Program-made: the position numbers and the translations under genes | The notes under the pieces: model-generated | Database searches by the model: none | What the model saw: the letters and a program-made list of their open reading frames with translations, nothing else | Told to the model about the DNA's origin: nothing | Source of the DNA: Eutreptiella sp. 'Long Island Sound 2002' | Lineage: Eukaryota; Protista; Euglenida | Direction of reading: 5' to 3' | Assembly (NCBI GenBank): GCA_964036045.1 | Contig: OZ038378.1 | Coordinates: forward strand, 65,844,001 to 65,908,000 | DNA length: 64,000 nucleotides | Shown here: one piece after another, positions 5,401 through 60,782 of the stretch | Position numbering within the stretch: position 1 is the stretch's first letter | Layout of the letters: each line of letters starts with the position of its first letter

Positions 5401-5479
5401 ATTGTTGCCTGTGACCGGGGTGCATGCCGGGGGGCCTACTAGGGGTGTGAGGACAAATCAGGGGGTGCACACCGGTAAC

Positions 5480-5785: not shown

Positions 5786-5819
5786 AACGGCCACTTAACG
5801 GCCGTTCACGAAGGGTACA

Positions 5820-8375: not shown

Positions 8376-8389
8376 GGAAATGACCTACC

Positions 8390-12000: not shown

Positions 12001-12100
12001 GCAGGCATGACTGTAGTGCAACTGCTCAGCCCCCTGTGTTTCCTGCCCTTCTCCAACCTCTAGATTTAGACCCGTACCTGGTGGTGTCCTCCCCCCTGGT
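9059..12100 (+). pseudogene. Long 5' coding region (ORF1-like) of the LINE; no recognised domain except a probable RanBP2-type Zn finger
   Basis: ORFs 8981..10018 and 10061..10924 share a frame across one TAG, followed by 10936.. and 11309... The sequence (R)AAC-x10-CASC at 11369-11422 fits C-x2-C-x10-C-x2-C if CGT derives from TGT. Confidence 0.55.
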
Positions 12101-12164
12101 ACCGGGCGGTGCTGAGCTCCTACAGCAGGCGGTCTGCCATATGCAGTCCCTGTTTGAGCTCACC

Positions 12165-16598: not shown

Positions 16599-16804
16599 TG
16601 TCTCAGTGTGTCCGCTCAACCGTCCGCAAATAGCCTTGCTTGGCTGGACTCTCTCTCGCGCCATGCATGGTGCACGTGCCCCACTCACCTGGGCCTCATT
16701 CCTCGGAGTGTGTGAGTGTGTAACGGCTGGACGTTCTGCCGGCGGACGCCCTTTGGCGGATCGTCGGACGACGGCTCTAGCACCGCATGACATGACATGA
16801 CATG

Positions 16805-18164: not shown

Positions 18165-18930
18165 AATTCAGCTGAGGGGCACAAGGGCCCCCTGTACGCG
18201 GCATTGGCTGTGGAAGCCTTGGAAGAAGTCCAGCAGGGCACGTGACCCATGGGGGTTTGCTCATGGTGGCGCTGACAGGCTGAGGGACTGTGAAGGGATC
18301 ATGGCAAACAGGTAGTGCAAGGCATTGGAAGTGCTGCTCACACACCTTTGGGGGGGCGTTGTTCGGCCCAATCACTTGGGGGTCACGCTCAGAGACTTCA
18401 CAAAGTGCGCCCTGCCGTACGTCCTCTTCAAGTATTAGGGACAAGATGTTGGGAATCAGGGTGGGTTGGTAAAGGTGGTCCGCGCAGATGACCCGTCAAA
18501 GTGGGAGGGAAGGCGGGTGCAACAATATGTGCACAAGCCGCTGCAACGGCAGTCGGGGTATGTGCATGATGACAAGGCATCAATGTACCGGACTATTGGC
18601 CTCCCTCTCAGGAGGGAGTGTACATCTGCTTAGATTCAGTGCATTTTCCGCAACAGGCTTTTTGCACCCCTGTTGGGGTGTATGTGGCATCCCTGCCACA
18701 TGGGGTTCGCCAGTGCGTGAGGCCTCTCGGTGTGTGTCGCTCTGCGACCTTGCACTCGGGAATTGATGGCCAATGTGCATGGCGCAAGTTGCCCCGTCTT
18801 GTAAAGGACCACATCCTTGGCTGACACTAGACATGCTTACCCTTGCGAGCAGCATAATGTGGATGCAGTCCTGGCGTTGTGGCCACTGCACATTGCCTTA
18901 CTGTGTGTGTCCCTGATCTTGCATTCACCC
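18165..18930 (+). pseudogene. C-terminal (post-helicase) region of the helicase element, oriented opposite to the adjacent N-terminal part
   Basis: RHWLWKPWKK...PWGFAHGGA...IMAN matches RHSLWKAWKR...PMGFAHAGS...VMAN (45200-45330). YVASLPHGV..C..LGVC..DGQCAWRKL matches 45690-45820. Confidence 0.8.
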
Positions 18931-19048
18931 ATGACCTATGACCTCTGACCTGTGACCTATGACCTATCAGCTTCAACCCGTCACCTATGACCTATGACGT
19001 ATGCCCTATGACCTTCGACCTATACCGTTTGACCCATTACATATGCCC
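18931..19048 (+). repeat. Degenerate (TGACCTA)n heptamer array ending the helicase element
   Basis: atgacctatgacctctgacctgtgacctatgacctatc... Confidence 0.85.
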
Positions 19049-19089
19049 TTTAACTGTTCACAATCATTTCTTGCTTTTGCCCGCCATGA

Positions 19090-28000: not shown

Positions 28001-28390
28001 TGTCTCCATGGGCTGCGGTGATATGTAGCACGGTATACAAGGTGAAGGCTGTCGCTGCAGCCCCTGAAGCCATGTGTGCAGGGGCTACGGTGATATGTAT
28101 GATGGTCTACAAGGTGTAGGATATCACCGCAGCCCCTGAGGTCATGTCTGCAAGGGTTGCCGTGGTATGTATGATGGTCCCGCAGCCCCTCACACCATGT
28201 CTCAATCGGCTGCGGTGCTATGCAGCTTGGTCTGCAGCCCTTGAACCCATGTCTACATTGGCTACGGTATTATGTATGATGGTCTACAAGGTGTAAGGGA
28301 TCACCACTGCCTTTGAAACCATGCTTCCATGGGCTGCACTGATATGTATGATGGCCTGTAAGGTATGAAGCATCACCACAGCCCCTGCAA
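19090..28390 (+). repeat. 72-bp hairpin satellite, variant A (about 9.3 kb) with higher-order duplications
   Basis: By-eye consensus gaaaccatgtctccatGGGCTGCGGTGATAtgtagcatggtctacaaggtgtagggTATCACCGCAGCCCct. The period of 72 was checked at 26130 and 26202. Each monomer has 14-bp inverted arms. Confidence 0.95.
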
Positions 28391-39429: not shown

Positions 39430-39900
39430 CCCCCCCCCCTTCACATTGTGGTGTGTAGGATTGTGATGTTTGGGGCTTTGGTGTCTGGGGGTGTGTTGGG
39501 GGGGTGGGCTGTGGTGTGGGGGTGTGTGGTTTGCAGGGCTGTGTTGTGGGGTTGGGTGGTTATCGGGGTTGTGGTGTGTGGGCCCGTGGTGCATGGGTTG
39601 TGGTGTGTGTGGATGTGGTTTTTGGGGCTGTGGTGTGTGGGGGTGTGATGTTTAGGGCTGTGGTGTCTGGGGGTGTGGTTTCTAGGGATGTGGTGTGTGG
39701 CGATGTGGGCGGGGGGGGGGGGTTTCCACAGCTCTGGTATTTGGGGGTGTGGTGTTAGGTGCTGTGGTGTGTGGAGGGCTAGTTTCCAGGGCTGTGGTAT
39801 GCAGGGTCGTGGTGTTGGCTACTCTGGTGTGTAGGGCTATGGTCTGTGGGCTATGCTATGCGACGTTGTGGTGTTGGGCGCTATGGTGTGGGAGTGTAGG
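39430..39900. repeat. Degenerate TG-rich low-complexity repeat (gtggtgtgtgg)
   Basis: Direct inspection. Confidence 0.8.
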
Positions 39901-40139: not shown

Positions 40140-40615
40140 TGGGGTTTGGTGTGTGCGCCTGTCCTGTCAGGGTGTCTGAGATGTCATGCTGGGGTGTGTG
40201 GGGTTGGTGGTATATGGTGTATTGGGCTGTGGTATGTGGGGCTGCGGTGTAAAGGGTTGTGGTGTAGGCAGCTATGGTTTTGGGGGCGGTGGGTAGTGTG
40301 TTTGGCTGCCTGATGTGGGCTCTGGCGCGCCGGGTTGTGATGGTTCGGGCTGTTGGGGGTGGGGCTGTGGGCTGTGGTGCTGTGGTATAAGGGGTTACAC
40401 TACACGGCCCCCACGGCCCCACCCCCCACAGCACCACCTCTCACAACTGCAAGCACCATAACTTGGCACGCCACAACCCCACGCCTTGCAGCCCCACGCC
40501 CTGCAGCCCAACACACCACGGCCGAACACCCACAGGACCACACCCCACACACCCCACACCCCACACGCCACACACCCCGCACACGACACACCACAGCCGC
40601 GGGATTGTGTATAGC
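40140..40615. repeat. TG-rich arm followed by a CA-rich arm (loose inverted repeat)
   Basis: Strand composition flips at about 40410. Confidence 0.6.
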
Positions 40616-40972
40616 GACCTAGTCGGCTATCAAACATCAGACATCAGTTTTTTATGGACCACCATTACCCAACCATGAACCCCCCCTTCCCCAAACCCCT
40701 CCATTATGCACTACCTCAGACCCCCCCCTCCCTCCCCGCTCTTGTCCACATCAAACGTATTCACTGGAACCCCCCCCCCCCTGATGGTGAACCCCCCCCG
40801 GTGAGCCGCCCATCCCTCTCCCCACTCTTGGGTGCTTTCAAGTGCCCCCCCCCCCCGGAAAGGAAAAAAGGTGTCATGGAAAACACGCAACCCCCCCGCC
40901 CCCCGGAAAACAATTGCAATTACTTGCATCTCACCTTTGTTGTTGACAGCATTGTATCTGCCAATCCCAATT

Positions 40973-41270
40973 TAATTATGCAGAACACCCTTGAGGTGTT
41001 TTGGTTGTTTGTGGTCTAGGCCTTGCCGCCTACCACCATATACCCCTTCAGTGATGAACATGCTGACAACGGCTGAGAAGGGGTTCTGACATGTTCGCTT
41101 CTGCATCCAATTACAATTTTTTGACAATTTGATTATGTAGAACACCGTTGAGGTGTTTTCATTGGTCGTGGTCTAGGCCTTGGCGTCTACGACCATCTAC
41201 CCCTTCAGTGATGAACATGCTGACAACAAGCTGAGAAGGGGTTCTGACATGTTCGCTTCTGCATCCAATT
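40973..41270. repeat. Tandem direct duplication of about 140 bp (period about 158 bp)
   Basis: ccccttcagtgatgaacatgctgacaac...ttctgacatgttcgcttctgcatccaatt occurs twice. Confidence 0.85.
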
Positions 41271-43099
41271 GGAATTTGCAGACTGCGAGCCCCTTGAATG
41301 ACGATGCATGACACTTGACATATGTTGCCTAGGCCTCTCCGTAGCCCACACCAAGCTTCACGGGATGTGGATTGTGGGCTGTGGATTGTCCATCACGACA
41401 CAATGCTCCGTCACGCGTGGGTTATTGTGTGGACCCTTGCAAGGACCTTTGTCTTATGACCTGTTTTGTGCGGACCGAGCTTTTGAAAATGGGGAAAACT
41501 TCGCAGCTGAGGAAAGGGACATCCCTCACTGTCCTCTGCGCTGTTGCCACCATCAGTCAATTTGTCATGGCTGACCAAATGTGCACCATGTCCTCCAAGG
41601 GCTAACAACCATTTTGAAAACCCTTGTTTGTCAATGTCATGTGCAACCAACATACATCTCAGAAGGGCCTTTGTAGTTGAATTCGAGTCTGATTTGCCAT
41701 TGTGCAATGTTTTTTTATCCGACCCTCTTACTTAGCCTTCAAGGATGTTTGCAATTTGCTGCACTTTGCACCCCTCATGCTTTGTTGTTTATTCGCAGGA
41801 AGTATGGAAAAACATCTGGTGACGACCATAAAACACCCGTTGTCTTTGCGAGCTTTGTCTTGCTGTTCTTTGCATGTTTCCATGCTTTGCTTTCCTTTGT
41901 GCTATTTCTCTAAGAAGTATGGAAAATCATTCAGAAAATACGACAGCGTAGGGAAAACACCCCCCCCCCCCTCTCGTGCATGAGCATATGGAAAAGTCTG
42001 TCCTCCCTTTTTGTATGTAATGTGTCACATGGTCTGTTCAAAGAATGTATGTGTGAACATATGTCTCAGTTGCTTGATGTTCTTGTGCCTACCATAACCA
42101 TTTTATTTGTGGATCCGAATTCCATTGATACCAATTGCAATGGTCATGATGTTGTCCCTTGAGGCAGCAGGGCTTGCCGGCAGTCTCAGCCGTGACGCTG
42201 TGACTGTAGGTGATCTGTAGGTGTCATGTACCCACCCATTTGCCATTGTTTGCCTTTTGTCCTCTTTGCAACCCCTTTAGTGATGATCTCATTCATTGGT
42301 GTACCCTGTGGGGCTAGTCTGCCGATGTTGGGTTTGGGCTGTGCCACAAACCCCTGCAGGGACCTTTTATTTAGGCCCTGTTTAGTGTTGTCAGGAGGTT
42401 GAGAAATGCATTGTTTTGTGCACTGAGAACCGCCCTTTGCAGATTCTGCAACACATGAATGCACTGCACAGCATGGCGACGTTCATGCACTTTGCGCGCT
42501 GAGAAGGCCCGGGCCACCACCAGCCTTTGTGCCACTCATCAGCAAGGAGACAGGTCCACTCTCCGCAGCGACCTCACAGTGCCTCAGAGTGGCAACCCCA
42601 AAGTTCAATGAGCACCCACAGGGTGTTCCTAAGCGGTCCCCCATAGGGTATATCGGACCTTCATATCGAAAAACATGACATCTGAGAAGGGGCTCTGCTA
42701 TGTGTAAAATTCTCTTCAAAGTTGAACATACTTTGTCGCATGGTGCTTTTGTGCTTTGCTTTTATTTTGCTGCCCATGTCCGTCTTCACGCAATGGGAAA
42801 CAAATCGGAAAACGCCCTCCTCCCCCTTCCCATTCGGCGACCGCATCAAAGAGCCTACCCCCCCACTTTTAACAATAGCATGGCGCAGTTATTTACCGTT
42901 CCTGTGGTCCAACATACCCCCATGCCAATCTTCCATGCTTTTCTATACTTGACAGTTGTTTCTTGCCCACCACAACCTACGAGTTGTAGTTTTTGCTGTG
43001 TGGCCTCAACCTTAGCGTTGTAGTCCACGAAGTCGCTCTCCAACCGCTCTCTTCCACTTGTTGCGAACTTCCAAACCATGGGTCCAAGAGTCACCCACA

Positions 43100-45937
43100 A
43101 GACCAAATATGGTGGTCCGAAGCCAAAGCCAAAGCCAAAGGCAACGCCCCTACCACCACCCGGGGGTGTGGATTTCGTCATGGTCCCACCACAACCCTCC
43201 GCACAACCAAAGCTAGCGCGTGCCCTTGAGCCGTAGCAGTCCGCCCCTGTCCCGGCCTTGGCGCCCGTTGACTCGGGATCGCAGGGTGCTCAACCCTCTG
43301 CACACCCACTGCGTGCCCCTGAGCCGCAGCAATCCGCCCCTGTCCCGGCCTTGGCGCCGGTTCACTCGGGCGCGCCGCAGGGTGGTCAACCCTTTGCACA
43401 CCCACTGCATGCCCTTGAGCCACAACCGCTCACCCCTATCCCGGCCGTGGTGCCGGTTGACTCGGGTGCGCCACAGGGTGGTCAACCCTCATCACAACTA
43501 TTGTGTGCCCTTGAGCCACATCAGTCCACCCCCTTCCCGGCCTTGGCGCCGGTTGACTCGGGTGCGCCATCAGGTGGTCAACCCCTGGCACAACCACCAT
43601 GTGCCCCTTCCGCCACAGCCATTTTTCCAACTCCCACAGCACCCAACACCCTTGCCTAGTACTGCCACATGGAAGAACCCGGACTATGGGCCCGGTGACA
43701 ACCTTGTGGCGGGGTTTACACAATGCTGGCTTGACCGTGACAGGTTTGTGGCCAAAGCATCAGAGGTGTACACTGTCCATGAGATGGAGGCTGCTGAGGT
43801 GTGGGCAGAGAAGAACGGCACGAATAGGAACCTGGCCTTTGAGGAATGGTACCCTGAAGATGACGGTGATGGGAATGCGAATGTTCCCCGACAGCCACAT
43901 TTGGCCTGCAAAATGGAGGTTTGGGGCAACTATGAGCTCAGTTATTCAATATGGTGGCATGGTGCATGGGTGGATCGCTGCCAACCGCAATCGGGACGCC
44001 TCGAAACCAAATTTAGAGGCAAGGGTGCATGGTCATGGCATCTCAGGCGACCGTGTCTGGATCAGTTGTGCTAATAAGCCACGAGCCAATCTGAATGCCA
44101 CATACTGGCAGTAAGGTTGTCCCTGGCACGGCTGCCTATGCACCTTGCGTAAGGAGATTCAGCAAGGGTTAGCATGGCCCAAAATTCTGGCAAACATCCG
44201 GGCTGAACCACGGGACGCGCCTCCCTTGTCGAACGAAGACCAAGAGATCCTTAAACACCTTGTCCAACGGCACTGCTTGAACCCCTCACAGGCATTGGTT
44301 GTGCGTCAGGTACTAGACGAGTCATGCATCACAGCATTGAGTGGAGGTGCTGGGACAGGGAAGTGAGAGACCTTGTCACAAGGCCCCGGAGTGCATTTCC
44401 ATGACCCTCTCCGCTAGTGCCGTGGCACAGCATAATGGCCGCATGAACATGCCATTGGCTACGGTTATGCGTAGGTGTAGACGCTTACCGACAAAAGCCA
44501 CACAATGCCGGAGCCACACCATTTGGGCGTAGTGTGTGGTCACTGCCGCCACACATCTCTCGGAGTATGTCCCTGCCTTGCTTGCCACCTCCAAGAAATG
44601 GCACACAAGGAGTCCCTCCTCTTGACTCATTTTCCCGGTTGAGGACAACACATCATCAACATGTAGGGTGTCCCATGCCTCTGACACCAACTACCAGACT
44701 TCCTCGAGGCGTTGTGCCACCAATACGCCCTGCGGTTCTTCCCACCAATGGGGCTTATCTAGGTCCACAATGCGGATGGCATTACGAAACACCGCGTCAA
44801 GAAGGGGGTGGGTGGGTGAGTGGTAATGACCTACTGCCCCCCCCCCCCCCGTGAACAAGGCAGGTCAATACCCTATCCTCAAGGTGGTTGCTCCCATGGA
44901 TTCGTTCCAAGGCCTGCAACACCAAGTCATGTTGGCTTACTTAGGTTACAGGGATCATGACGGACATCTTTAGGGCAAGCACACTGACCAGCAAGGCAAA
45001 ATTTGAACTCCACCTCTTTGGGCGCATCACCCTGTGGGTGCAACACCCCACGCCCAGTGCATGGATCATCACACTAAGTGCTGTCCAACGGGAAGCTAGC
45101 TCAGGTATTCTGAGGGACACCCTTCAGTTGGCTGGGGTTTCGAGGGAGGCCGGACTCATCCCCGACGTGAAGAGGGGCACAATCTATTGGTTGGAGGCTT
45201 CGGTGGTGCGGCACTCGCTTTGGAAGGCTTGGAAGAGGAGCATGAAGCCATGTGCTCCCATGGGGTTTGCTCATGCCGGGAGTGCCCAGTTGTTGGACAG
45301 GGAGCGGGTCATGGCAAACAGTTGGTCCGATGCACTGGCAGTGCAGCTCAGAGATCTTCGGGGGAATCGTGTTTAACCGATGCCCTTGGACGTCACCCTT
45401 CTAGACCTCACAGAGTGGGCCTCGCCGTATGTGCTCTTGGAGGATGACGAAGAAGATGTTGGCAACTTAGGTGGGTTGATAAGGGTGGGCCACACAAGGG
45501 ACCTGGCACAATGGAGGGAAGATTTGTGCAACACCTTGTGCACAAGTCCTTGCAAATGAAGCAAGGTTGTTTGCATACGAACAAGGCATGGTGTGACGGC
45601 ACCATTGACGTTGTTGTTTGGAGGGACGCGTACAACTTTCTGGATGGACCACGCTTTTTGGAGGGGGATTGATGTAGCCCCCTTGGGGTTTACGTGGCAT
45701 CCCTACTGCATGGGGTTGCCCCGTGCTTTGGGATTCTTGGGGTGTGCCCACTTGGGACGGTGCACACGGGGGTTGATGACCAATGTACGTGGTGCAAGTT
45801 GCACCGTTCCCTAAAGGACTACATCCTTCGCCGACACTAGACATGCTGACCCTTGGAGGCAGCATGCTGTGGATGCAGTCTTCGCCGTGGCGCCAATACT
45901 CCACACTGCCTAATCCTGTCAATACGAGATCTTGCAT
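43100..45937 (+). pseudogene. UPF1/DNA2-like SF1 helicase element, copy 2 (motifs Ia-III deleted, many frameshifts)
   Basis: LNPSQALVVRQVL (Q motif); GGAGTGK (44343-44363); RMNMPLA (motif IV); MDSFQG (44896-44913, motif V); TSKAKFELHLFG (motif VI-like TRAK..l.ivG); then the conserved C-terminal region. Confidence 0.8.
43220..43600 (+). repeat. Four 93-96-bp tandem units encoding a Pro/Ala/Gln-rich repeat upstream of the helicase
   Basis: Units start at about 43220, 43313, 43409 and 43505 and translate as ..PALAPVDSGAPQGGQP... Confidence 0.85.
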
Positions 45938-46130
45938 TGACCTATGACCTATGACTTGTGACCTGCGACCTATGACCCCAGACTTGTGACCTATGACCTA
46001 TGTCCTATGACCTATGCCCTATGGCCTGGAATCTATGACCTATGACCTTCAGAATAGGGACATATGACCTGTGACCTATGCCCTATGACCTGGAACCTGC
46101 GAGCTTTGAGCGATACCTATGACGTATGAC
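45938..46130 (+). repeat. (TGACCTA)n heptamer array
   Basis: Direct inspection; same position relative to the element as 18931. Confidence 0.9.
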
Positions 46131-46174
46131 CTTGGTTGTTTACCACGGATCCTTGCTTTTGTTTGCCTTGAATA

Positions 46175-49100
46175 CGTCCATGTGGGATGGGATACAAGTC
46201 AACAAGGAGTAAGGAATCTCAAGAGCCCTTGAAACCACATCTCCATGGGGTCGCTTGATATGCCTAAGGGTCTACAAGGTGTAAAGATGCAGTGCAGCCC
46301 CGAAAACCATGTCTCTATGGGCTGCGGTGATATGTAGGATGGTCCACAATTTGTAAGGATTCACCGCAGCCCCTGTAACCATGTTTCCATGCGCTGCGGT
46401 GATATGCATCATGATCCACAAGGTGGAAGGATTCACCGCAGCCCTTGAAGCCATGTCTCCATGGGTTGTGGTGATGTGTAGGTTGGTCCTCAAGGTAAAA
46501 CGATTCACTGAAGCCCCTAAAACGATGTCTCCATGGGCACCGGTAATATCTAGGATGCTCTACAAGGTGTAAGGATCCACGGCAGCCATGTGAATTGATG
46601 TTGACCCCGTTCGGCAAATCATGGAGGGGTCAACACCATTCAAGGATCACCGCAGCCCCTGTGAATGGATGTAGACCCCCTACGGTGATTCATTGAAGGG
46701 TCCACATGCTTCACCGATTCACTCTCGCCCGTAGATGAGTGTACACCCCCTGCGGTGAATCATTGAGGGGTCTACACCCTTCTAGGATTCAAAGCACCCT
46801 TTGTGAACGTGTGTAGACCCCCTCCGGTGAATCATTGAGCGGTTTACACCCTCTAAGAATTCACCGCAACCCTTGTAGGTGGGTGCACACCCCTTGCGGT
46901 GCTGCAGCCCGTGTATGTGCAGTTAGACCCCCTTTGGTGAATCATTGAGGGATCTACCACCTTCACGGCTTCACCGCAGCCTCTGTGAATGGGTCTAGGC
47001 CCCTTGCGGTGAAACGTAGAGCGGTTTACACCCCTCAAGGGATTACCGCAGCCCCTGTAGATGAGTGTATAGCCCGTGTGGTCAATCATGGAGGCGTCTA
47101 CACCCTTCAAGGATTCACCGTAGCGCCTGTGAATGCGTGTTGACCCCCTCTGATCAATCATGGAAGGTTCCGCACCCTGCGATGATTCACCTGAGCCCCT
47201 TCAAGTGAGTGCACACCCCCTGCGGTGAATCATTGAGGGATCTACACCTTTCAAGCACTCACCGCAACCCCTGTGAATGGGTAGACACGCCCTGCGGTGG
47301 ATGGTTGAGGGGTCTACACCCCTCAACTATTCACCGGAGTGCTTGTGCATGGATGTAAACCCCGTGCGGCGGATCATGGAGGGGTCTACACCCTTCATGT
47401 AATCACCACAGCCCCTGTAGATGAGTGTACACCCCCTGCGGTGAATCATGGAGGGGTCTACTCCCCTCAAGGACTCGCCGCAATTCCTGTAGATGCGTGT
47501 GCACCCCTTTGGTGAATCATAGAGGGGTGGGTCTACACCCCTCAAGGATTCACCGCAGCCCCTATACCTCAATGTACACCCTCTGTGGTCAATCATGGAG
47601 GGGTCTAGACCCCTCGAGGATTCACCGGACCCCTTGTAGATGGGTGTAGACACTTTGTGGCGAATCATGGAGGCGTCTGCTCCCCTCATGGATTCACTGC
47701 ACCCTCTGTGAACGGGTGTAGACCCCTTGTGGTGAATCATTGAGGGGTCTACACCCTTCAAGGAATCACCGCAACCCCTGTGAATGGGTGAATCATTCAA
47801 GGGTCTACACCCATCAAGGATTCACCGCAGCCCCGGTAGCTCGGTGTACACCCCGTGCGGTGAAAAATTGAGGGGTCTACTCCCTTCAAGCATTCACCGC
47901 AGCCCTTGTAGGTGGCTGTAGACCGCCTGCGGTGATTCATTAAGGGGGCTACACCCTTGAAGGATTCACCGCAGCCTATATGAATGAGTGTAGACCCCCT
48001 GTGGTGACTCGTGGAGCGGTCTACCACAATCACTGATTTACCATGTGAATGGGTCTAGACTTTGTGCACTGAATCATGGGGGGGTCCTCACCTGCAAAGG
48101 GTTCACCGCAGTCCTTGTGGATGAGTGTACTCCCCTTGCGGTGAATCATGGAGGGGTCTACACCCTTCAAGGATTCGCCGCAACCGATGTGAATGTGCAT
48201 TGACCCCCTGCGGTGAACCATTGAAGGGCCCATACCCTTCAAGAAGTCACTTCAGCCCCTTCAATTGAGTGTACACCCCCTAAGGTGAATCATTGAGGGA
48301 TATACAGTTTTCAAGCATTCACTGTAGCCCCTGTGTATGGGTGTACACCCCCTGCGGTGAATGGTTGAGGGGTCTACAGCCCTCAATGATTCACCGCAGC
48401 TCTTGTAGGTGTGTGTAGATCCTTTGCGGTGAATCATGGAGGGGTCTACACCCTTCAAGGATTCGCCGCAACCGATGTGAATGCGCGTTGACCCCCTGCG
48501 GTAAACCATTGAAGGGCCCATACCCTTCAAGAAGTCACCTCAGCCCCTTCAATTGAGTGTACACCCCCTAAGGTGAATCATTGAGGGATATACACTTTTC
48601 AAGCATTCACCGTAGCCCCTGTGTATGGGTGTACACCCCCTGCGTTGAATGGTTGAGGGGTCTACAGCCCTCAATGATTCACTGCAGCTCTTGTAGGTGT
48701 GTGTAGATCCTTCGCGGTGAATCATGGAGGGGTCTACACCCTTCAGGGATTCACCGCAGCCCTTGTACGTGGGTGTACATCCCTTGCGGTGAATCATGCA
48801 GCGGTCTACACCATTCAAGGATTCACTAGAGCTTTTACAGATGGGTGTACACCCGCATGCAGTGAATCATTGAGGGGTCTACACCCTTCAAGGATTCACC
48901 ACACCCTTTGCAGATGGGTGTACACCCCGTGTGATAAATCATGGAGGGGTCTACACCCCTCAAGGATTCACCGCAGCTCTCGTACATGAGTGTACAACCC
49001 TTGCGGTGAGTTATAGAGGGGTCTACACCCTTCAAGGATTCACCACACTCGTATACCTGAGTGTACATCCCGTGCGGTGAATCATGGAGGCGTCTACACC

Positions 49101-52100
49101 TCTCAAGGATTCACCGGAGCCCTTGCAAATGGGTGTAGACACCTTGTGGCGAATCATGGAGGGGTCTACCCCCCTCAAAGATTCACGGGAGCCGTTGTAG
49201 GTCGGTGTACACCACCTGCGGTGAACCATAGAGGGGTCTACACCCTTCAAGGATGCACCAGAGGCTTTGCAGATGGGTTTACATCCCCATGCAGTGAATT
49301 ATTGAGGGGTCTACACCCTTCAAGGCTTCACCACAGACCTTGCAGATGGGCCTACACCCCGTGAATCATGGAGGGGTCTACACCCCTCAAGGATTCACCG
49401 TAGCTCCTGTAGATGAGTGCAAACGACTTGCGGTGAATCATAGAGGGGTCTACACCTTTCAAGCATTCAAAGTAGCCGGTGTGAATGGGTGTAAACCCCC
49501 TGCGGTGAATGGTTGAGGGGTCTACACCCCTCAAGGATTCACCGCAGGCTCCTGTAGATGAGTGTACACCCCGTGCGGTGAATCATAGAGGGGTTCTACA
49601 CCTTTCAAGCATTCGCAGTGGCCCGTGTGAAGGGGTGTAAACCCCTTGCGGTGAATGGTTGAGGGGTCTGCACCCCTCAAGGATTCACAGCACCTCCTGT
49701 AGATGAGTGTACACCCCGTGCGGTGAATCATAGAGGGGTCTTCACCCTTCAAGGATGCACTACAGGCTTTGCAGACGGGTGTACAGCCCCAGTGGAATGA
49801 ATCATTGAGGGGTTCACACCCTTCAAGGATTCACAACAGCCCTTGCACATGGGTGTACACCCCGCGTGGTGAATCATGGAGGGTTCTACACCCCTCAAGG
49901 ATCCACCGCAGCTCCTGTAGATTAGTGTACACCCCCTGCGGTGAATCATAGAGGGGTCTACACGCTTCAAGGCTTCACCGCAGCCCTCATACCTTAGTGT
50001 ACACCCCCTGCGGTCAATCATGGAGGGGTCTACACCGCTCAAGGATTCACCGGATTCCTTGTAGATGGGTGTAGACCCCTTGCGGCGAATCGTGGAGGGG
50101 TCTACACCCCCAAAAGATTCACCGTACCCTCTGTGAACGGGTGTAGACCCCTTGCGGTGAATCATTGAGGGGTGTACACCCTTCAAGGAGTCACCGCAGC
50201 CCCTGTGAATGGGTGTTTGCCCCCTACGGTGAATCATTCAAGGGTCTACACCCCTCAAGGATTCACCGCAGCCCCTGTAGATGAGTGTACACGCGCTGCG
50301 ATGAATCATGGATGGGTCTCTGCCCTTCAAGGTTTCACCGCAGCCCCTATGAATGGGTGTACACCCCCTGTGGTGAATCATTGGAGCGTACACACCCTTC
50401 AAGAAGTCACCTCAGCCCCTTCAATTGACTGCACACCCCTTACGGTGAGTCCTGGAGGGGTGTACACTTTTCAAGCATTCACCGTAGCCCCTATGAATGG
50501 GTGTACACCCCCCTGCGGTGAATGGTTGAGGCGTCTACACCCCGCAAGGATTGACCGCAGCCGTTGTAGGTGGGTGTAGAATCCTTTGCGGTGAATCATG
50601 GAGCGATCTACACCCCTCAGGGTTTCACCGCAGCCCTTGTTCATGGGTGTAGATCCCTTGCGGTGAAACGTGGTTCACTAGAGCCTTTGCACATGGGTGT
50701 ACACCCCGTGCAGTGAAGCATTGAGGGGTCTACACCCTTGAAGGATTCGCCATAGTGCTCGCAAATGGCTGTACACCCCGTGCGGTGAATCATGGAGGGG
50801 TTCACACGCCTCAAGGATTCACCGCAGGTCCTGTAGATGAGTGTACACCCCGTGCGGCAATTCATAGAGGGGTTTACAACCTTCACGGATGCAGCATAGG
50901 CTTTGCAGATGGGTGTACACGTGCATGCAATGAATCATTGAGGGGTGTACACCCTTCAAGGATTCAACACAGGCCATGCAGATGGGTGTACACCCCGTGC
51001 GGTGAATCATGGAGGGGTCTACACCGCTGTAGGATTCACTGTAGCTCCTGTAGATGCGTTCAAACGCCTTGCGGTGAATCATAGAGGGGTCTACACTTTT
51101 CAAGCTCTCATAGTAGCCCGTGTGAATGGGTGTAAACCCCCTGCAATGAATGGCTGAGGGGTTTACACACCCCTCAAGGATTCACCACAGCTCCTGTAGA
51201 TGAGTGTACACCCCCTGCGGTGACTCATAGAGGGGTGGGTCTACACCGCTCAAGGATTCACCGCAGCCCCTCAACCTGAGTGTACCCCCCCTGCGGTCCA
51301 TCATGTAGGGGTCTACACCCCTCAAGGATTCACCGGACCCCTTGTAGATGGCTGTAGACCCCTTGCGGCGAATCTTGGTGGGGTCTACACCCCCAAAGGA
51401 TTCACGCACCCTATGTGAACGCGTGTAGACTCCTTGCGGTGAATCATTGAGGGGTCTACACCCTTCACGGATTCGGCGCAACCCCTGTGAATTGGTGTTT
51501 ACCCCCTGCAGGGAATCATTCAAGGGTCTGCGACCCTCAAGGATTCACCGCACCCCTGTAGATGAGTGTACACCCGCTGCGATGAATCATGGATGGGTCT
51601 CTGCCCTTCAAGGTTTCACCGAAGCCCCTATGAATGGGTGTACACCCTCTGTGGTGAATCACCTTCAAGGAGTCACCTCAGGATCTTCAATTGAGTGCAC
51701 ACCCCTTACGGTGAATCATGGAGGGGTCTACTCTTATCAAGCATTCACCGTAGCCCCTATGAATGCGTGTACACCCCCTGCGGTGAATGGTCGAGGGGTC
51801 TACACCCCTCCAAGATTCACTGCAACCCTTGTAGGTGGGTGTAGATCTCTTGCAGTGAATCATCGAGGGGTCACACCGCTTAGGGATTCACCGAACCCCC
51901 TTCATGGGTGTAGATCCCTTGCGGTGAATCATGTTTCACTAGAGCCTTTGCAGATCGGTGTGTACCCCGTGCAGTGAATCATTGAGGGGTCTACACGCTT
52001 CAAGAATTCACCACAGTCTTTGAAAATTGGTTTACACCTCACGCGGTGAATCATGGAGGGGTCTACACCCCTCAGGGATTCACCGCACCCCTTGTTCATG

Positions 52101-53272
52101 GGTGTAGATCCCTTGCGGTGAACCATGGTTCACTAGAGCCTTGGCAGATGGGTGTACACCCCGTGCAGTGAATGATTGAGCGGTCTACACCCTTCAAGGC
52201 TTCACCAGAGTCTTTGAAAATGGGTTTACACCCCGCGCCGTGAATCATGAAGGGGTCTTCACGCCTCAAGGATTCACCGGAGGTCCTGTAGATGAGTGCA
52301 CACCCCGTGCGGCGAATCATAGAGGGGTCTACACCCTTCAAGGGTGCAGCATAGGCTTTGCAGATGGGTGTACACCCCGTGCAGTGAATCATTGAAGGGT
52401 CTACACCCTTACAGGATTCACCACAGCTCTTATAGGTTGGTGTAGATCCCTTGGGGTGAATCATGGAGGGGCCGTTGTTCATGGGTGTAGATCTTTTGCG
52501 TTGAATCATGGTTTACCAGAGCCTTTGCAAATGGGTGTTCACCCCGTGCAGTGAATCATTGAGGGGTCTACACCTTTCAAGGATTCACCACAGCCCTTGC
52601 AGATGGGTGTACACCCCGTGTGGTGAATCATGGAGGGGTCTACACCCCTCAAGGATTCACCGTAGCTGCTGTAGATGAGTGCACACTTTCTATGCTGAGT
52701 CATGGAGGGGGCTACACCTTTCAACCTTTCACAGTAGCCCGTGTGAATTGGTGTAAACCCCCTGCGGTGAATGATTGAGGGGTCTACACCCCTCAAGGAT
52801 TCACCGCAGCTCTTGTAGGTGGGTGTAGATCCCTTGCCGTGAATCATGGAGGGGTCTAAACCCCTCATGGATTCACCGCAGCTCTTGTAGGTGGGTGTAG
52901 AACCCTTGTGGCGAATCTTGGAGAGGTCTACACCCTTCAAGGATTCACCAAAGCCTTTGCAAATGGGTGTACACCCCGTGCAGTGAATCATCGATGGGTC
53001 TACACCCTTCAAGGCCTCACCGCAGCCCTCGCAGATGGGTGTACACCCCATGCGGTGAATCGTAGAGGGGTCTACACCCCTCACCGATTCACCGCAGCTA
53101 CTTTAGATGAGTGTACACCCCATGCGGTGAATCATGCAGGGGTCTATACCCCTCAAGGATTCACCGGACCCCTTGTAGACAGCTGTATACACCTTGTGGC
53201 GAATCATGGACAGGTCTTCCCCCCTCAAGGTTTCACGGGAGCCCTTGTAGGTGGGTGTACACCCCTTGCGGT
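46175..53272 (+). repeat. 72-bp hairpin satellite: about 5 variant-A-like units (to about 46600), then variant B
   Basis: By-eye variant B consensus gatGGGTGTACACCCctTGCGGTGAATCatggaggggtctacacccttcaagGATTCACCGCAgcccctgta is 72 bp, with 11-bp inverted arms and a 12-bp palindrome. Confidence 0.95.
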
Positions 53273-54155
53273 GCCCAGTGCATGGATTACCACACTAAGG
53301 TCTTCCAATGGGAAGCTAGCTAAGGCATTCTGAGGGACACCCTTCAGTTGGCTGGGGTTTCGAGGGAGGCCGGACTCATCCCCGACGTGAAGAGGGGCAC
53401 AATCTATTGGTTGGAGGCTTCGGTGGTGCGGCACTCGCTTTGGAAGGCTTGGAACAGGAGCATGAAGCCATGTGCTCCCATGGGGTTTGCTCATGCCGGG
53501 AGTGCCCAGTTGTTGGACAGGGAGCGGGTCATGGCAAACAGTTGGTCCGATGCCTGGCAGTGCAGCTCAGAGATCTTTAGGGGAATTGTGTCTAACCGAT
53601 ACCCTTGGAGGTCACCCTCGTAGACCTCACAGAGTGGGCCTCGCCGTATGTGCTCTTGTAGGATGACGACGAAGATTTTGGCAACTTAGGTGGGTTGATA
53701 AGGGTGGGCCACACAAGGGACCTGGCACAATGGAGGGAAGATTTGTGCAACACCTTGTGCACAAGTCCTTGCAAATGAAGCAAGGTTGTTTGCATAGGAA
53801 CGAGGCAGGGTGTGACGACACCATTGACGTTGTTGTTTGGAGGGACGCGTACAACTTTCTGGATGGACCACACTTTTTGGAGGGGGATTGATGTAGCCCT
53901 CTTGGGGTTTACGTGGCATCCCTACCGCATGGGGTCGCCCCGTGCTTTGGGATTCTTGGGGTGTGCCCACTTGGGACGGTGCACGCGGGGTTGATGACCA
54001 ATGTACGTGGTGCAAGTTGCACCGTTCCCTAAAGGACTACGTTCTTGGCCGACACTAGACATGCTGACCCTTGGAGGCAGCATGCTGTGGATGCAGTCTT
54101 CGCCGTGGCGCAATACTCCACACTGCCTAACCCTGTCAATACGAGATCTTGCATT
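53273..54155 (+). pseudogene. Duplicate of the helicase-element C-terminus (45052-45937)
   Basis: Near-identical sequence at an offset of 8221 bp; ORF 53348.. matches ORF 44957... Confidence 0.9.
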
Positions 54156-54350
54156 GACCTATGACCTATGACTTGTGACCTGCGACCTATGACCCCAGAC
54201 TTGTTGCCTATGACCTATGTCCCATGACCTATGCCCTATGGCCTGGAATCTATGACCTATGACCTTCAAAATTGGGACATATGACCTGTGACCTATGCCC
54301 TATGACCTGGAACCTGCGAGCTCTGAGCGATACCTATGACGTATGACCTT
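54156..54350 (+). repeat. (TGACCTA)n heptamer array, third copy
   Basis: Near-identical to 45938-46130. Confidence 0.9.
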
Positions 54351-54394
54351 GGTTGTTTACCACGGATCCTCGCTTTTGTTTGCCTTGAATACGT

Positions 54395-57300
54395 CCATGT
54401 GGGATGGGACACAAGTTAACAAGGAGTAAGGAATCTCAAGAGCCCTTGAAACCACATCTCCATGGGGTCGCTTGATATGCCTAAGGGTCTACAAGGTGTA
54501 AAGATGCAGTGCAGCCCCGGAAACCATGTCTCCATGGGCCGCGGTGATATGTAGGATGGTCCACAATTTGTAAGGATTCACCGCAGCCCCTGTAACCATG
54601 TTTCCATGCGCTGCGGTGATATGCATCATGATCTACAAGGTGGAAGGATTCACCGCAGCCCTTGAAGCCATGTCTCCATGGGTTGTGGTGATGTGTAGGT
54701 TGGTCCTGCGGGTAAAAGGATTCACTGCAGCCCCTGAAACGATGTCTCCATGGGCTCCGGTAATATCTAGGATGCTCTACAAGGTGTAAGGATCCACGGC
54801 AGCCATGTGAATGGGTGTTGACCCCGTGCGGCAAATCATGGAGGGGTCAACACCATTCAAGGATCACCGCAGCCCCTGTGAATGGATGTAGACCCCCTAC
54901 GGTGATTAATTGAAGGGTCCACATCCTTCACGGATTCACTCTCGCCTGTAGATGAGTGTACAACCCTTGCGGTGAGTTATAGAGGGGTCTACACCCTTCT
55001 AGGATTCACCACACTCGTATACCTGAGTGTACATCCCGTGCGGTGAATCATGGAGGCGTCTACACCCCTCAAGGATTCACCGGAGCCCGTGCAAATGGGT
55101 GTAGACACCTTCTGGCGAATCATGGAGGAGTCTACACCCCTCAAAGATTCACGGGAGCCGTTGTAGGTGGGTGTACACCACCTGCGGTGAACCATAGAGG
55201 GGTCTACACCCTTCAAGGATGCACCAGAGGCTTTGCAGATGGGTTTACACCCCCATGCAGTGAGTCATTGAGGGGTCTACACCCTTCAACAATTCACCAC
55301 AAACCTTGCAGATGGGCCTACACCCCTTGTGGTGAATCATGGAGGGGTCTACACCCCTCAAGGATTCACCGTAGCTCCGGTAGATGAGTGCAAACGACTT
55401 GCGGTGAATCAGAGAGGGGTCTACACCTTTCAAGCATTCACAGTGGCCCGTGTGAATGGGTGTAAACCCCTTGCGGTGAATGGTTGAGGGGTCTACACCC
55501 CTCAAGGATTCACAGGAGCTCCTGTAGATGAGTGTACACCCCCTGCGGTGAATCATAGACGGGTCTTCACCCTTCAAGGATGCACTACAGGCTGTGCAGA
55601 TGGGTGTACATCCTCAGTGGAATGAATCATTGAGGGGTCTACACCCGTCAAGGATTCACAACAGCCCTTGCACATGGGTGTACACCCTGTGTGGTAATCA
55701 TGGAGGGGTCTACACCCCTCAAGGATCCACCGCAGCTCCTGTAGATTAGTGTACACCCCCTGCGGTGAATCATAGAGGGGTGTGCACGCTTCAAGGCTTC
55801 ACCGCAGCCCTCATACCTTAGTGTACACCCCCTGCGGTCAATCATGGAGCGGTCTACACCGCTGAAGAATTCACCAGACTCCTTGTAGATGGGTGTAGAC
55901 CCCTTGCGGCGAATCGTGGAGTGGTCTACACCCCCAAAGGATTCACCGTACCCTTCGTGACCGGGTGTAGACCCCTCGCGGTGAATCATTGAGGGGTCTA
56001 CACCCTTCAAGGATTCACCGCAGCCCCTATGAATGGGTGTACACCCCCTGTGGTGAATCATTGGAGGGTATACACCCTTCAACAAGTCACCTCAGCCCCT
56101 TCAATTGACTGCACACCCCTTACGGTGAGTCCTGGAGGGGTGTACACTTTTCAAGCATTCACCGTAGCCCCTATGAATGGATGTACACCCCTTGCGGTGA
56201 ATGGTTGAGGCGTCTACACCTTGCAAGGATTGACCGCAGCCGTTGTAGGTGGGTGTAGAATCCTTTGCGGTGAATCATGGAGCGATCTACACCCCTCAGG
56301 GTTTCACCGCAGCCCTTGTTCATGGGTGGAGATCCCTTGCGGTGAAGAATGGTTCACTAGGGCCTTTGCACATGGGTGTACACCCCGTGCAGTGAAGCAT
56401 TGAGGGGTCTACACCCTTGAAGGATTCGCCATAGTGCTTGCCAATGGCTGTACACCCCGTGCGGTGAATCATGGAGGGGTTCACACGCCTCAAGGAGTCA
56501 CCGCAGGTCCTGTAGATGAGTGTACTCCCCGTGCGGCGAATCATAGAGGGGTTTACACCCTTCAAGGATGCAGCATAGGCTTTGCAGATGGGTGTACACG
56601 TGCATGCAATGAATCATTGAGGGGTGTACACCCTTCAAGGATTCAGCACAGCCCATGCAGATGGGTGTACACCCCGTGCGGCGAATTATAGAGGGGTTTA
56701 CACCCTTCAAGGATGCAGCATAGGCTTTGCAGATGGGTGTACACGTGCATGCAATGAATCTTGAGCGGTGTACACCCTTCAAGGGTTCAGCACAGCCCAT
56801 GCAGATGGGTGTACACCCTGTGCGGTGAATCATGGGGGGTCGACACCGCTGTAGGATTCACCGTCGCTCGTGTAGATGAGTGCAAACGCCTTGCGGTGAA
56901 TCATAGAGGGGTCTACACCTTTCAAGCTTTTACGGCAGCCCGCGTGAATGGGTGTAAACCCCCTGCAGTGAATGGTTGAGGGGTCTACACCCCTCAAGGA
57001 TTCACCGCAGCCCCTCAACCTGAGTGTACACCCCCTGCGGTCAATCATGCAGGGGTCTACACCCCTCAAGGTTTCACCGGACCCCTTGTAGATGGCTGTA
57101 GACCCCTTGCGGCAAATCGTCCAGGGGCCTACACCCCCAAAGGATTCACCGCACCCTCTGCGAACGCGTGTAGACCCCTTGCGGCGAATCATTGAGGGGT
57201 CTACACCCTTCACGGATTCGGCGCAACCCCTGTGAAGGGGTGTTTACCTCATTGAAGGGTCTACAACCCTCACGGATTCACCTCAGCCCTGTAGATGAGT

Positions 57301-60300
57301 GTACACCCCCTGCGATGAATCATGCATGCGTCTCCAGCCTTCAAGGATTCTCCGCAGCCCCTGTGAATGGGTGTACACCCCCTATGGTGAATCATTGAAG
57401 GGTCTACACCCTTCAAGGAGTTCCCTCAGCCCCTTCAATTGAGTGCACACCCCTTACGGTGAATCATGGAGGGGTCTACACTTTTCAAGCATTCACCGTA
57501 GCTCTGCGGTGAATGGTCGCGGGGTCTACACCCCTCGAGGATTCACTGCAACCCTTGTAGGTGGATGTAGATCTCTTGCGATGAATCATGGAGTGGTCTA
57601 CACCCCTTAGGGATTCACCGAACTCCCTTCATGGGTGTAGATCCCTTGCGGTGAATCATGTTTCACTAGAGCCTTTGTAGATCGGTGTGCACCCCGTGCG
57701 GTGAATCATTGAGGGGTCTACACGCTTCAAGAATTCACCACAGTCTTTGAAAATTGGTTTACACCTCACGCAGTGAATCATGGAGGGGTCTACACCCCTC
57801 AAGGATTCACCGCAGGTCCTGTTGATGAGTGCACACCCCGTGCAGCGAATCATAGAGGGGTCTACACCCTTCTAGGACTCCCCAAAGCCCTTGCAGATGG
57901 GTGTACACCCGGTGCGGTGAATCATGGAAGGGTCTACACCCCTCAGGGATTCACCGCACCCCTTGTTCATGGGTGTAGATCCCTTGCGGTGAATCATGGT
58001 TTACTAGAGCCTTTGCAGATGGGTGTACACTGTGCAGGGACCCATTGAGGGGTCTACACCCTTCAAGGGTGCAGCATAGGCTTTGCAGATGGGTGTACAC
58101 CCCGTGCAGTGAATCATTGAAGGGTCTACGACCTTCCAAGATTCATCACAGCTCTTATAGGTGGGTGTAGATCCCTTGTGGTGAATCATGGAGGGGCCGT
58201 TGTTCATAGGTGTAGATCCCTTGCGGTGAATCATGGTTCACGAGAGCCTTTGCAAATGGGTGTTCACCCCGTGCAGTGAATCATTGAGGGGTCACACCCT
58301 TCAAGGATTCACCGCAGCCCTTGCAGATGGGTGTACACCCCGTGTGGTGAATGATGGAGGGGTCTACATCCCTCAAGGATTCACCGTAGCCCCTTTAGAT
58401 GACTGCACACCTTCTACGCTGAGTCATGGAGGGGACTGCACCTTTCAACCTTTCACACTAGCCTGTGTGAATGGGTGTAAACCCCCTGCGGTGAATGATT
58501 GAGGGGTCTACACCCCTCAAGGATTCACCGCAGCTCTTGTAGGTGGGTGTAGATCCCTTGCCATGAATCATGGAGGGGTCCAAACCCCTTATGGATTCAC
58601 CGCAGCTCTTGTAGGTGGGTGTAGAACCCTTTTGGTGAATATTGGAGAGGTCTACACCCTTCAAGGATTCACCAAAGTCTTTGCAAATGGGTGTACACCC
58701 CGTGCAGTGAATCATTGATGGGTCTACACCCTTCAAGGCTTCACCGCAGCCCTTGCAGATGGGTGTACACCCCGTGCAGTGAATCATAGAGGGGTTTACA
58801 CCCCACAACCATTCGCCGCAGCTACTTCAGATGAGTGTACACCCCGTGCGGTGAATCATGCAGGGGTCTATACCCCTCAAGGATTCACCGGACCCCTTGT
58901 AGACAGGTGTATACACCTTGTGGCGAATCATGGACAGGTCTACACCCCTCAAGGTTTCACGGGAGCCCTTGTAGGTGGGTGTACACCCCTTGCGGTGCAT
59001 AATAGAGGGGTCTACACCTTTCAAGGATGCACCGCAGCCCTTGCAGATGGGTGTAGACACCTTGTGGCGAATCATGGAGGGGTCTACACCCCTCAAGGAT
59101 TCACGGGAGCCGTTGTAGGTGGGTGTACACCACCTTCGGTGAACCATAGAGGGGTCTACACCCTTCAAGGATGCACCAGAGGCTTTGCAGATGGGTTTAC
59201 ACCTCCATGCAGTGAATCATTGAGGGGTCTACACCCTTCAAGGCTTCACCACAGCCCTTACACATGGGTGTGCACCCGGTATGGTGAATCATGGAGGGGT
59301 GTACAGCCCTCAAGGATTCACCCCAGCTCCTTTAGATGAGTGCAAACGACTTGCGGTGAATCATAGAGGGGTCTACACCTTTCAAGTCTTCACAGTAGCC
59401 CGTGTGAATGGGTGTAAACCCACTGCGGTGAATGATTGAGGTGTCTACACCCCTCAAGGATTCACCGCAGCTCCTATAGATGAGTGTACACCCCTCGCCG
59501 TGAATCATAGAGGGGTCTACACCCTTGAAGGATGCACTACAGGCTTTGGAGATGGGTGTACAGGCCCGTTGCAGTGAATCATTAAGGGGTCTACACCGTT
59601 GAAGGATTCACAACAGCCCTTGCCGATGGGTGTACACCCCGTGTCGTGAATCATGGAGGGGTCTACACCCCTCAAGGATCCACCGCAGCTGCTATAGATG
59701 AGTGTACACCCCTTGCGGTGAATCATAGAGAGGTCTACAGCCTTCAAAGATTCACCGCAGCCCCTATACCTGAGTGTACACCCCCTGCGGTGAATTATGG
59801 AGGGGTCTACAACCCTCAAGGACTCACCGGAGACCTTGTAGATGCGTGGAGCCACCTTGTGGCGAATCATGGAGGGGTCTACACCCCTAAAGCATTCACC
59901 GCACCCTCTGTGAACGGGTGTACACGCCCTGCGGTGACTCTTTGAGGGGTCTACACCGTTCAAGGATTCACGGCAGCCCCTGTGATTGGGTGTTGACCCC
60001 CTGGGGTGAATCATTCAAGGGTCTGCACCCCTCAAGGATTCACCGCAGCCCCTGTAGGCCTGCCTGTAGATGAGTGTACACCGTGTCTGGTGAATCATTG
60101 AGCGGTCTACACCCTTCAAGGTTTCACCGCAGCATATGTGAATGAGTGTACACCCCCTGCCGTGAATCGCTGAGCGGTCTACCACCTTCACGGATTTATC
60201 GCACCCCCTGTGAATTGGTCTAGACCCAGTGCACTGAATCAGGGGCCGGTCCTCACCCTTCAAGGATTCACCGCAGCCTGTGTTGGGTGTACACCCCCTG

Positions 60301-60782
60301 CGGTGAATTGTTGAGGGGTCTACACCCCTCAAGGATTCACCGCAGCCCTTGTAGGTCAGTGACTACCCCCGGCAGTGAATCATTGTCAGGTCTACACCCT
60401 TCAAGGATTCACCAGAGCCCCTGTGAATGGGTCTACACCCTTCAGGGATTCACCGGAGCCCTTGTAGATGGGTTTTGATTCCTTGTGGTGAATCATGGAG
60501 GGGTCTACACCCTTTAAGGATTCATAGTAGCCGTTGTAGGTGAGTTAGATCCCATAGAGTGAATTATTGAGTGGCCTGCAGCCTTCAAGGATTCACCGCA
60601 GCCGCTGTAGATGAGTGTACACCTCCTCCGGTGAGTCATTGAGGGAGGGGTGTACACCTTTCAAGCATTCACCGCAGCCCTTGTAGATGGGTGCAAACCC
60701 ACTACGGTCAAATCATTGCGCGGTCTGCACGCTTGAAGGATTCACCGCAGCCCCTGTAGGTTGGTTTAGACCCCCTGCGGTG
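54395..60782 (+). repeat. 72-bp hairpin satellite (short A-like start, then variant B), a duplicate of the previous array with a ~2.2-kb deletion
   Basis: 54395-54960 matches 46175-46744, and from about 54955 the sequence matches 48985 onward. Confidence 0.95.

Follow-up and report, generated by a model that had tools for sequence, protein, structure and literature searches.

We analysed a stretch of 64,000 nucleotides from the euglenid Eutreptiella sp. 'Long Island Sound 2002' (assembly GCA_964036045.1, contig OZ038378.1, positions 65,844,001 to 65,908,000 of the forward strand), hereafter the window, in which the C-terminal end of a helicase gene is followed at three places by an array of TGACCTA heptamers, a short linker and kilobases of a 72-bp satellite. 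A preliminary description of the window had reported this order at 18165, 45052 and 53273 (blocks A, B and C below), and Tandem Repeats Finder together with tblastn confirmed it at all three. We put the probability at roughly 85% that these blocks derive from a giant transposon of about 20 kb, a member of the hAT superfamily with more than 1000 candidate loci, and represent its 5' halves in a dead, truncated and rearranged state. The features of the three blocks are listed here by position and strand; ORF1 and ORF2 are the first two open reading frames (ORFs) of intact copies found elsewhere in the genome, and S3, S4 and S5 are satellite variants.

8377-9046, minus: block A, continuation of the inverted helicase, amino acids (aa) 683-904, cut off from the piece at 16816 by a nested retrotransposon
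16816-17854, minus: block A, inverted helicase, aa 307-678 (tblastn)
18202-18827, plus: block A, helicase C-terminus, aa 1141-1352, an independent old copy (self-comparison, tblastn)
18927-19049, plus: block A, (TGACCTA)n, about 17 units (Tandem Repeats Finder)
19211-28390, plus: block A, 72-bp satellite, S5 type
40600-40650, plus: left terminus common to nine other copies, with a degenerate terminal inverted repeat (TIR, 40600-40623; CGGGAT-TGTGTATAGCGACC...) and subterminal ATCAGAC-type repeats
40600-43160, plus: 5' region with decayed ORF1, 74-86% identity to other copies
43162-44375, plus: ORF2 helicase fragment, aa ~155-613, with Walker A motif and a 96-bp coding tandem repeat (43218-43619); younger 52-bp S3 lineage, 84-88% to relatives
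44481-44861, minus: inverted helicase fragment, aa 894-1018; 72-bp lineage, 75% to L027, a copy from another assembly
44951-45837, plus: block B, helicase C-terminus, aa 1054-1352, a pseudogene of the 72-bp lineage (tblastn)
45938-46132, plus: block B, (TGACCTA)n, about 28 units (Tandem Repeats Finder)
46133-46197, plus: block B, linker, homologous to the spacer of other subfamilies
46198-53273, plus: block B, 72-bp satellite, about 5 S5-type units followed by S4-type units; dyad-symmetric consensus with GGTCTACA core
53273-54055, plus: block C, helicase C-terminus (aa 1098-1352 at 53303-54055 by tblastn), duplicate of 45052-45837 at 96%
54155-54349, plus: block C, (TGACCTA)n (Tandem Repeats Finder)
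54419-60782, plus: block C, 72-bp satellite, collinear with the block B satellite except for a gap of about 2 kb

For a triple heptamer pattern, the expectation in shuffled sequence was 0. When the intact ORF2 was used as the tblastn query, a helicase C-terminus was found directly 5' of each array, and the satellite, with higher orders of 144, 216 and 288 bp, started about 70-160 bp past each array by Tandem Repeats Finder and ran for 6-9 kb. The linker (..TTGCTTTTG..GTCCA..GATGGG.TA..) could be aligned among block A, blocks B/C and the independent copy L027. Comparison of the window with itself matched block C (53273-54600) to block B (45052-46383) at 96% identity and block A (18198-19014) to block B (45208-46027) at about 71%, and a chunk-by-chunk map showed B and C to be collinear tandem units of 8.2 kb, with about 2 kb missing from C. 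We therefore count A and B as independent copies and C as a local duplicate, which agrees with the earlier statement that two of the blocks are diverged and independent.

All helicase copies in the window are fragments with frameshifts, and the ORFs there are short and broken. For the ORFs around the helicase Pfam returned almost nothing, with a weak AAA_30 match for the piece with the Walker A motif, and we attribute this near-blank result to the shattered state of the copies; an Rfam search of the window gave no match. Block B is, to judge from its nearest relatives, a chimera of two lineages, in that 40600-44375 belongs with the S3 lineage (84-88% identity) while 44481-44861 and 44951-45837 are closest to the 72-bp lineage. 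Its left TIR reads CGGGAT-TGTGTATAGCG, and a putative target 8-mer, CACAGCCG, lies just 5' of 40600; a second copy of this 8-mer was not found in the window. Similarity to ORF3 or ORF4, which make up the transposase half of the intact element, was likewise not found in the 64 kb, nor was a right TIR. With a left terminus but neither a transposase half nor a right end, the window copies are dead relics. The preliminary description had seen no TIR and no transposase in its module, and inside 43100-60782 both observations hold, but a left TIR lies just upstream, at 40600-40623, and the intact element has a hAT-like transposase downstream of the satellite.

The window's own genome (2.28 Gb) was searched with DNA and protein queries. 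A DNA query from window 43620-44375 gave 625 candidate loci; the 38 other scored loci all stopped at window 44373-44375, and a few loci extended the match into the 3' part of the helicase, at 64-68% identity. A piece of the helicase protein gave 1035 candidate loci, many of them within reading frames that stay open for 1352-1472 aa. The helicase 3' end of the 72-bp lineage was found at no fewer than 37 dispersed loci, at 66-82% identity, in a census that rests on match coordinates. Linkage to the satellite was followed in two small subsets of the candidate loci (40 of 128 and 39 of 503). A junction query spanning helicase, heptamers, linker and satellite matched at C3:111455132 and C2:27299849; at C6:70537674 the match ran through the heptamers, and satellite matches lay just downstream. 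S4-type satellite stood directly 3' of the helicase ends listed on C7 at 40.13 and 46.33 Mb and on C1 at 126.20 and 126.22 Mb. On C4, array matches were densely packed in two blocks, at 27.132-27.137 and 27.182-27.193 Mb, which showed no junction among the matches listed. The recurrence of the junction at dispersed loci bears out the earlier proposal that the linkage of helicase and satellite is old and belongs to a mobile element.

These searches also bear on an explanation without mobility, in which host helicase genes happened to lie beside a satellite and were multiplied by segmental duplication of one block. The preliminary description had named segmental duplication of one block as a possibility, and B and C do form a local tandem duplication, so that one of the three copies is accounted for in this way. 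However, more than 1000 dispersed loci span many chromosomes at identities graded from 64% to 98%, their termini are precise, and their flanks differ from locus to locus. We rejected duplication of a host gene on this dispersal and on the target-site duplications (TSDs) described below, and its probability is negligible.

The structure of the intact element was read from three copies, C23, C10 and C16, which agree at 98% identity across 7.8 kb and remain collinear for about 20 kb (from about 3960 to about 23915). On a single strand, the left TIR is followed by ORF1 (~360 aa), ORF2 (1352 aa), a spacer of about 0.5 kb, the internal satellite, ORF3 (~1070 aa), a 287-aa ORF, ORF4 (~1310 aa), a (TTTCCCC)n microsatellite and the right TIR. 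The array in these three copies is built of 52-bp units and is 1.8-3.1 kb long. The microsatellite, (TTTCCCC)9-13, lies about 470 bp inside the right end (L024:~8380-8445, c10, c16), and its repeat number varies among the 98%-identical copies. With such closely similar copies and intact ORFs, the family was recently active.

Diverged subfamilies, represented by ENA assembly contigs, share this plan. Contig L029 carries the helicase, a 41-bp array, ORF3, the 287-aa ORF, the transposase with its ubiquitin-hydrolase-like N-terminus (59% to the reference) and the right TIR. Contig L028 carries the left TIR, ORF1, the helicase (split by a 7-kb insertion) and a 52-bp array. On L027, one element is present on one strand with its ORF3-ORF4 half and right TIR, and it has inserted into the 72-bp satellite of an element on the opposite strand; this second element, with the order helicase, (TGACCTA)17, linker and 72-bp array, is an independent instance of the arrangement in the window. 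ORF3 and ORF4 were present past the array in every subfamily whose array was followed to its far side. The right end that sits within the other copy's satellite (L027:13400-13651) is one case suggesting that the internal arrays act as landing pads when further elements insert.

The ends of the element bear on its class. The left end reads CAG(C/G)(T/A)(A/T)-TGTGTATAGCGACC (CAG...TGTGTATA) followed by three ATCAGAC repeats, and the right end carries the inverted complement of this sequence, again with the ATCAGAC repeats on its inner side. An end identical in type stands upstream of ORF1-ORF2 in 10 copies, that at window 40600-40623 among them. All three complete copies are flanked by perfect 8-bp TSDs (CCGCCCCG, ATGCCCCG and GGGTGCAC). 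TIRs that begin with CAG, together with TSDs of 8 bp, are the signature of hAT transposons, whose short TIRs have the general start (C/T)A(G/A), and from the element ends the hAT assignment is well supported. The family is a transposon bounded by TIRs and TSDs, with an array that is internal and ancestral.

These termini also decide against the self-contained, helicase-driven system of the preliminary description, a Helitron-like or rolling-circle element whose terminal hairpin repeats would serve as a replication substrate. Such an element would fit the dyad-symmetric repeats that always lie 3' of the helicase gene and the lack of a transposase inside 43100-60782. Rep/HUH domains, which the preliminary description had proposed to seek in an intact copy, were not found by Pfam in ORF1, ORF2, ORF3 or ORF4, nor was a PIF1 domain; ORF2 matched only AAA_11, AAA_12, AAA_30 and AAA_19, and the helicase is of the Upf1/Sen1-like kind. 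It stands at a fixed distance from the TIR in the 10 copies, complete copies have TIRs and 8-bp TSDs around a putative Hermes-like transposase, and the satellite, which had been taken for 3' repeats, lies between ORF2 and ORF3. We consider a helicase-driven element very improbable and rejected the rolling-circle reading on the lack of Rep and PIF1 domains and the presence of TIRs and TSDs. The module first described is instead the 5' half of a hAT-like cut-and-paste transposon. Since the helicase gene and the hairpin satellite both belong to the intact element, what we describe is an unusual transposon family and not a new helicase-driven system.

We next consider ORF4, the candidate transposase. 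A word-index search with this protein returned seven ENA-sourced proteins only, at 67-93% identity, and no distant relative. An exhaustive profile search returned 202 proteins, mostly short fragments, with two distant full-length relatives, P0075 and P0079, which are about 26-29% identical to ORF4 by BLASTP (P0079 about 26%) and 27-33% in MAFFT alignments and in which Pfam found no domain. With P0079 as query, the word-index search again matched nothing beyond copies in ENA assembly records. Comparison of ORF4 with distant homologues revealed motifs conserved in order (LLDGSD/CDETSR, VDGAS.LG, C/H..H, (S/A)HRIR(W/F) and C-terminal ..ER..). This order is presumably that of Buster/DUF4371-type hAT transposases, and we treat it as a lead. 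Look-alikes chosen by a protein language model were uniformly members of hAT/DUF4371/FAM200 clusters (0.84 for ORF4, 0.89 for P0079). When a model of the ORF4 core from AlphaFold2 (AF2; predicted local distance difference test score, pLDDT, 47) was searched with Foldseek, the top 10 matches were all Hermes, with E values of 2e-3 to 5e-2. VIA-align superimposed the model on residues 142-266 of Hermes (2bw3_A) with Z 8.8 and a root-mean-square deviation of 3.0 A over 119 residues, the next unrelated fold reaching Z 7.3. In this model residues ~23-150 reached pLDDT 60-85, with strand-helix elements compatible with an RNase-H-like core. Judged by the ORF4 protein, the hAT assignment is moderately supported. 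The N-terminus of ORF4 matches the C-terminal part of the ubiquitin C-terminal hydrolase fold (Pfam UCH, 27.8 bits). Past the transposase core, at ORF4 ~aa 1130-1170 (L024:4168-8091), lies a Cys-rich motif, HDF..R.G..C..C....R.WC..C..C, conserved in P0079; its match to the C-terminal Cys-rich domain of piggyBac (6zop) was not significant (E 0.22).

Several observations weigh against membership of the window blocks in a hAT family. The Pfam model of the hAT dimerisation domain (PF05699) had no match at E up to 10 in whole ORFs, 8 homologues or C-terminal pieces; a ..P.E.A.ER.IS.RG.. motif resembles this domain by eye only. A sequence-profile search of the PDB with the transposase alignment did not reach Hermes and returned only the non-significant piggyBac match given above. 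The two AF2 models are poor (pLDDT 32 and 47, with residues ~23-150 alone usable), and unrelated folds of the RNase-H-like or actin-like kind score only about 1.5 Z below the Hermes match. TSDs were inspected in three complete copies only, and a complete copy of the 72-bp lineage was not among the retrieved loci. The 41-bp satellite variant consists of direct, not inverted, subrepeats of 20/21 bp and folds weakly (z -2.2). Lastly, the window copies themselves have neither a right end nor a TSD pair nor a transposase half, so that their membership is based on a single left TIR and on their homology with copies that are complete.

The helicase encoded by ORF2 matched Pfam AAA_11 (58.3 bits) and AAA_12 (42.6 bits) above the cut-off of 27, and full-length copies retain motifs I, II, III, V and VI of superfamily 1B (SF1B) intact (GGAGTGKS, FVDEAS, CGDPGQL, LDRFQG and TSRAQ). 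Sen1-type helicases are its nearest solved relatives. On these domain and motif matches ORF2 is classed as a Upf1/Sen1-like SF1B helicase. A word-index protein search matched only copies from ENA assembly records, with no close relatives beyond them. The 96-bp tandem repeat inside the helicase ORF (4-6 copies; window 43218-43619; L023:~1900-2280) codes for a proline-rich repeat of 32 aa on the N-terminal side of the helicase core; the tandem repeat occurs in all copies examined, in varying number.

The satellite accompanies the element through its divergence. It occupies one internal position, between ORF2 and ORF3, in every subfamily examined, whether the units are of 41, 52 or 72 bp. Five consensus variants were derived, S1, S2 and S3 of 52 bp and S4 and S5 of 72 bp. 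All five are strongly dyad-symmetric, their dimers folding with z -6.3 to -12.9 relative to shuffles, and all share the core GGTCTA[CG]A at the hairpin tip; ..TCA(C/G)CGC.GCCC.. is common to S3, S4 and S5. The common core and symmetry lead us to regard the arrays as homologous and as having co-diverged with the element. The preliminary description had called the 72-bp satellite a hairpin satellite, and this holds for consensus dimers (z -6.3 to -7.5), but single decayed units fold weakly (z -1.3 to -2.0). As the 41-bp variant also folds weakly, hairpin formation is not universal. The subrepeat motif of that variant, CCGTG(G)AAT(T)ATTT, resembles the arms of S1/S2, and what is conserved may be this arm motif more than the hairpin itself.

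Array length ranged from 1.8-3.1 kb among the 98%-identical copies to more than 17.5 kb in c2b. Length thus changes fast, by slippage or unequal exchange, and the earlier proposal that an element-borne satellite expands into long arrays stands. The heptamers have a comparable origin in the element. Three proto-heptamers, TGACCYA-YGGCCTS-TGACCAT, lie about 100 bp past the ORF2 stop codon in all subfamilies, together with a homologous linker; the array of (TGACCTA)17-28 is a lineage-specific microsatellite expansion of these three units.

Since the 72-bp lineage is represented by incomplete copies, we weighed whether it is a separate, non-autonomous derivative (left TIR, helicase, heptamers, satellite, right TIR) that never had the transposase half and was mobilised in trans by the 20-kb elements. 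The three window copies and L027 show no ORF3 or ORF4 after the satellite, and all copies of this lineage that were seen are old (66-81% identical), as such a derivative might predict. However, the satellite of L027 is interrupted by the insertion of another element, ORF3/ORF4 follow the array in every subfamily in which its far side was reached, and a right TIR was not found next to any 72-bp array. We hold a non-autonomous origin to be distinctly unlikely.

The element moves by cut-and-paste transposition, presumably carried out by ORF4, and makes 8-bp target duplications. Under our preferred reading, that the blocks are relics of autonomous hAT elements, the history of the window may be reconstructed as follows. 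Two old copies of the 72-bp lineage (A and the 3' part of B) would have lost their transposase halves. Block A probably underwent an inversion and received an insertion of a long interspersed nuclear element (LINE). The 3' part of B apparently came to lie behind the 5'-terminal 3.8 kb of a younger copy of the S3 lineage. Finally, the 8.2-kb unit of helicase tail and satellite would have been tandemly duplicated to give C, with unequal exchange within the array.

What the array does for the element is a matter for tentative suggestion. Our best guess, offered with less than even confidence, is that it acts in cis as a group of sites to which a protein of the element would bind, and that the helicase helps in the replication or processing of the structure-prone DNA. 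We give almost the same weight to the array being a neutral passenger prone to slippage. We think it rather unlikely that the helicase and the dyad-symmetric array constitute a functional trans/cis pair giving this hAT family an extra step. In that step the helicase might assist a 20-kb donor prone to form cruciforms, in its processing, its replication or its maintenance outside the chromosome; alternatively, the array might template small RNAs for self-regulation. If such a pair existed, the retention of helicase and array in every subfamily, across 35-60% protein identity, would reflect selection, and the family would represent a new functional class, a helicase-assisted cut-and-paste transposon that seeds much of the genome's satellite DNA.

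Compared with known hAT elements (Hermes, Ac, Tol2 and the Buster/DUF4371 type), the family shares 8-bp TSDs, short TIRs beginning with CAG, short subterminal repeats, an apparent RNase-H-like core with Hermes as best structural match, and the motif order D / DGA / C.H / RW / ER. It differs in its size, about 20 kb compared with 3-5 kb, in the fusion of the transposase to a ubiquitin-hydrolase-like N-terminus, in three further ORFs including the 1352-aa Upf1-like helicase, in a conserved internal satellite whose length reaches from kilobases to more than 17 kb, and in going unrecognised by the Pfam hAT dimerisation model. With Helitrons and Helentrons it has in common an SF1 helicase, hairpin-forming sequence near the 3' side of the helicase gene and satellite-like arrays. 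Those elements, however, have an HUH Rep and a Pif1-like helicase, whereas this one lacks the HUH Rep, carries a Upf1/Sen1-like helicase and has TIRs, 8-bp TSDs and internal repeats. Among Upf1-like SF1B helicases (Upf1, Sen1, Dna2-type), ORF2 is ordinary in its AAA_11 and AAA_12 matches and its motifs I, II, III, V and VI, but unusual in being transposon-borne at more than 1000 loci and in its N-terminus of proline-rich 32-aa tandem repeats.

In the literature searched, no description was found of a helicase-bearing hAT, a Euglena hAT or such a satellite, and among described DNA transposons that seeded a satellite, Tetris comes closest. Tetris, a short, non-autonomous foldback DNA transposon of Drosophila virilis without coding capacity, has internal tandem repeats from which a satellite arose (PMC4079207). 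Tetris and the present family are both DNA transposons whose internal tandem repeats expand into long satellite arrays. The array of the present family, in contrast, has a gene block on either side within an autonomous element and is kept in every subfamily.

The analysis thus removes a false lead, there being no new helicase-driven mobile system here, and documents an unusual 20-kb hAT-type family with a Upf1-like helicase, a fusion of deubiquitinase-like domain and transposase, and a conserved internal satellite. The family links transposition directly to the birth and turnover of satellites, one array having given rise to satellites of 41, 52 and 72 bp with a roughly tenfold change in array length among related copies, and it may account for a sizeable part of the genome's tandem-repeat and unclassified-repeat fraction.

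Some further features of the window were recorded. The nested element in block A is a non-long-terminal-repeat retrotransposon at 9058-16805 (plus strand), which splits the inverted helicase. It contains a 626-aa ORF (12109-13989) with an Exo_endo_phos endonuclease domain and ends in a (CATGA)5 3' tail (16786-16811), and a duplication of about 10 bp, CATGACTGCC, is present at both of its junctions. The helicase is broken near aa 894-904 in three independent copies of the 72-bp lineage; the break takes the form of an inversion breakpoint, the end of an inverted piece (window 8377 / 44861) or a 660-bp gap (L027:17261-17924), and an intron or a hot spot of rearrangement could explain the discontinuity. 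Minisatellites rich in G/T, with units of 15/30/60 bp, and a CA/C-rich microsatellite (39447-39839, 40511-40595) lie immediately 5' of the left TIR, and the element at 40600 appears to have landed in simple-repeat DNA. Finally, a different dispersed repeat occupies window 458-5819 and matches C1:80.5 Mb (L004:1-2981) at 90-95% identity; it holds arrays of an 11-bp unit, GAAATTCGTAC, that recurs near other copies of the hAT element.

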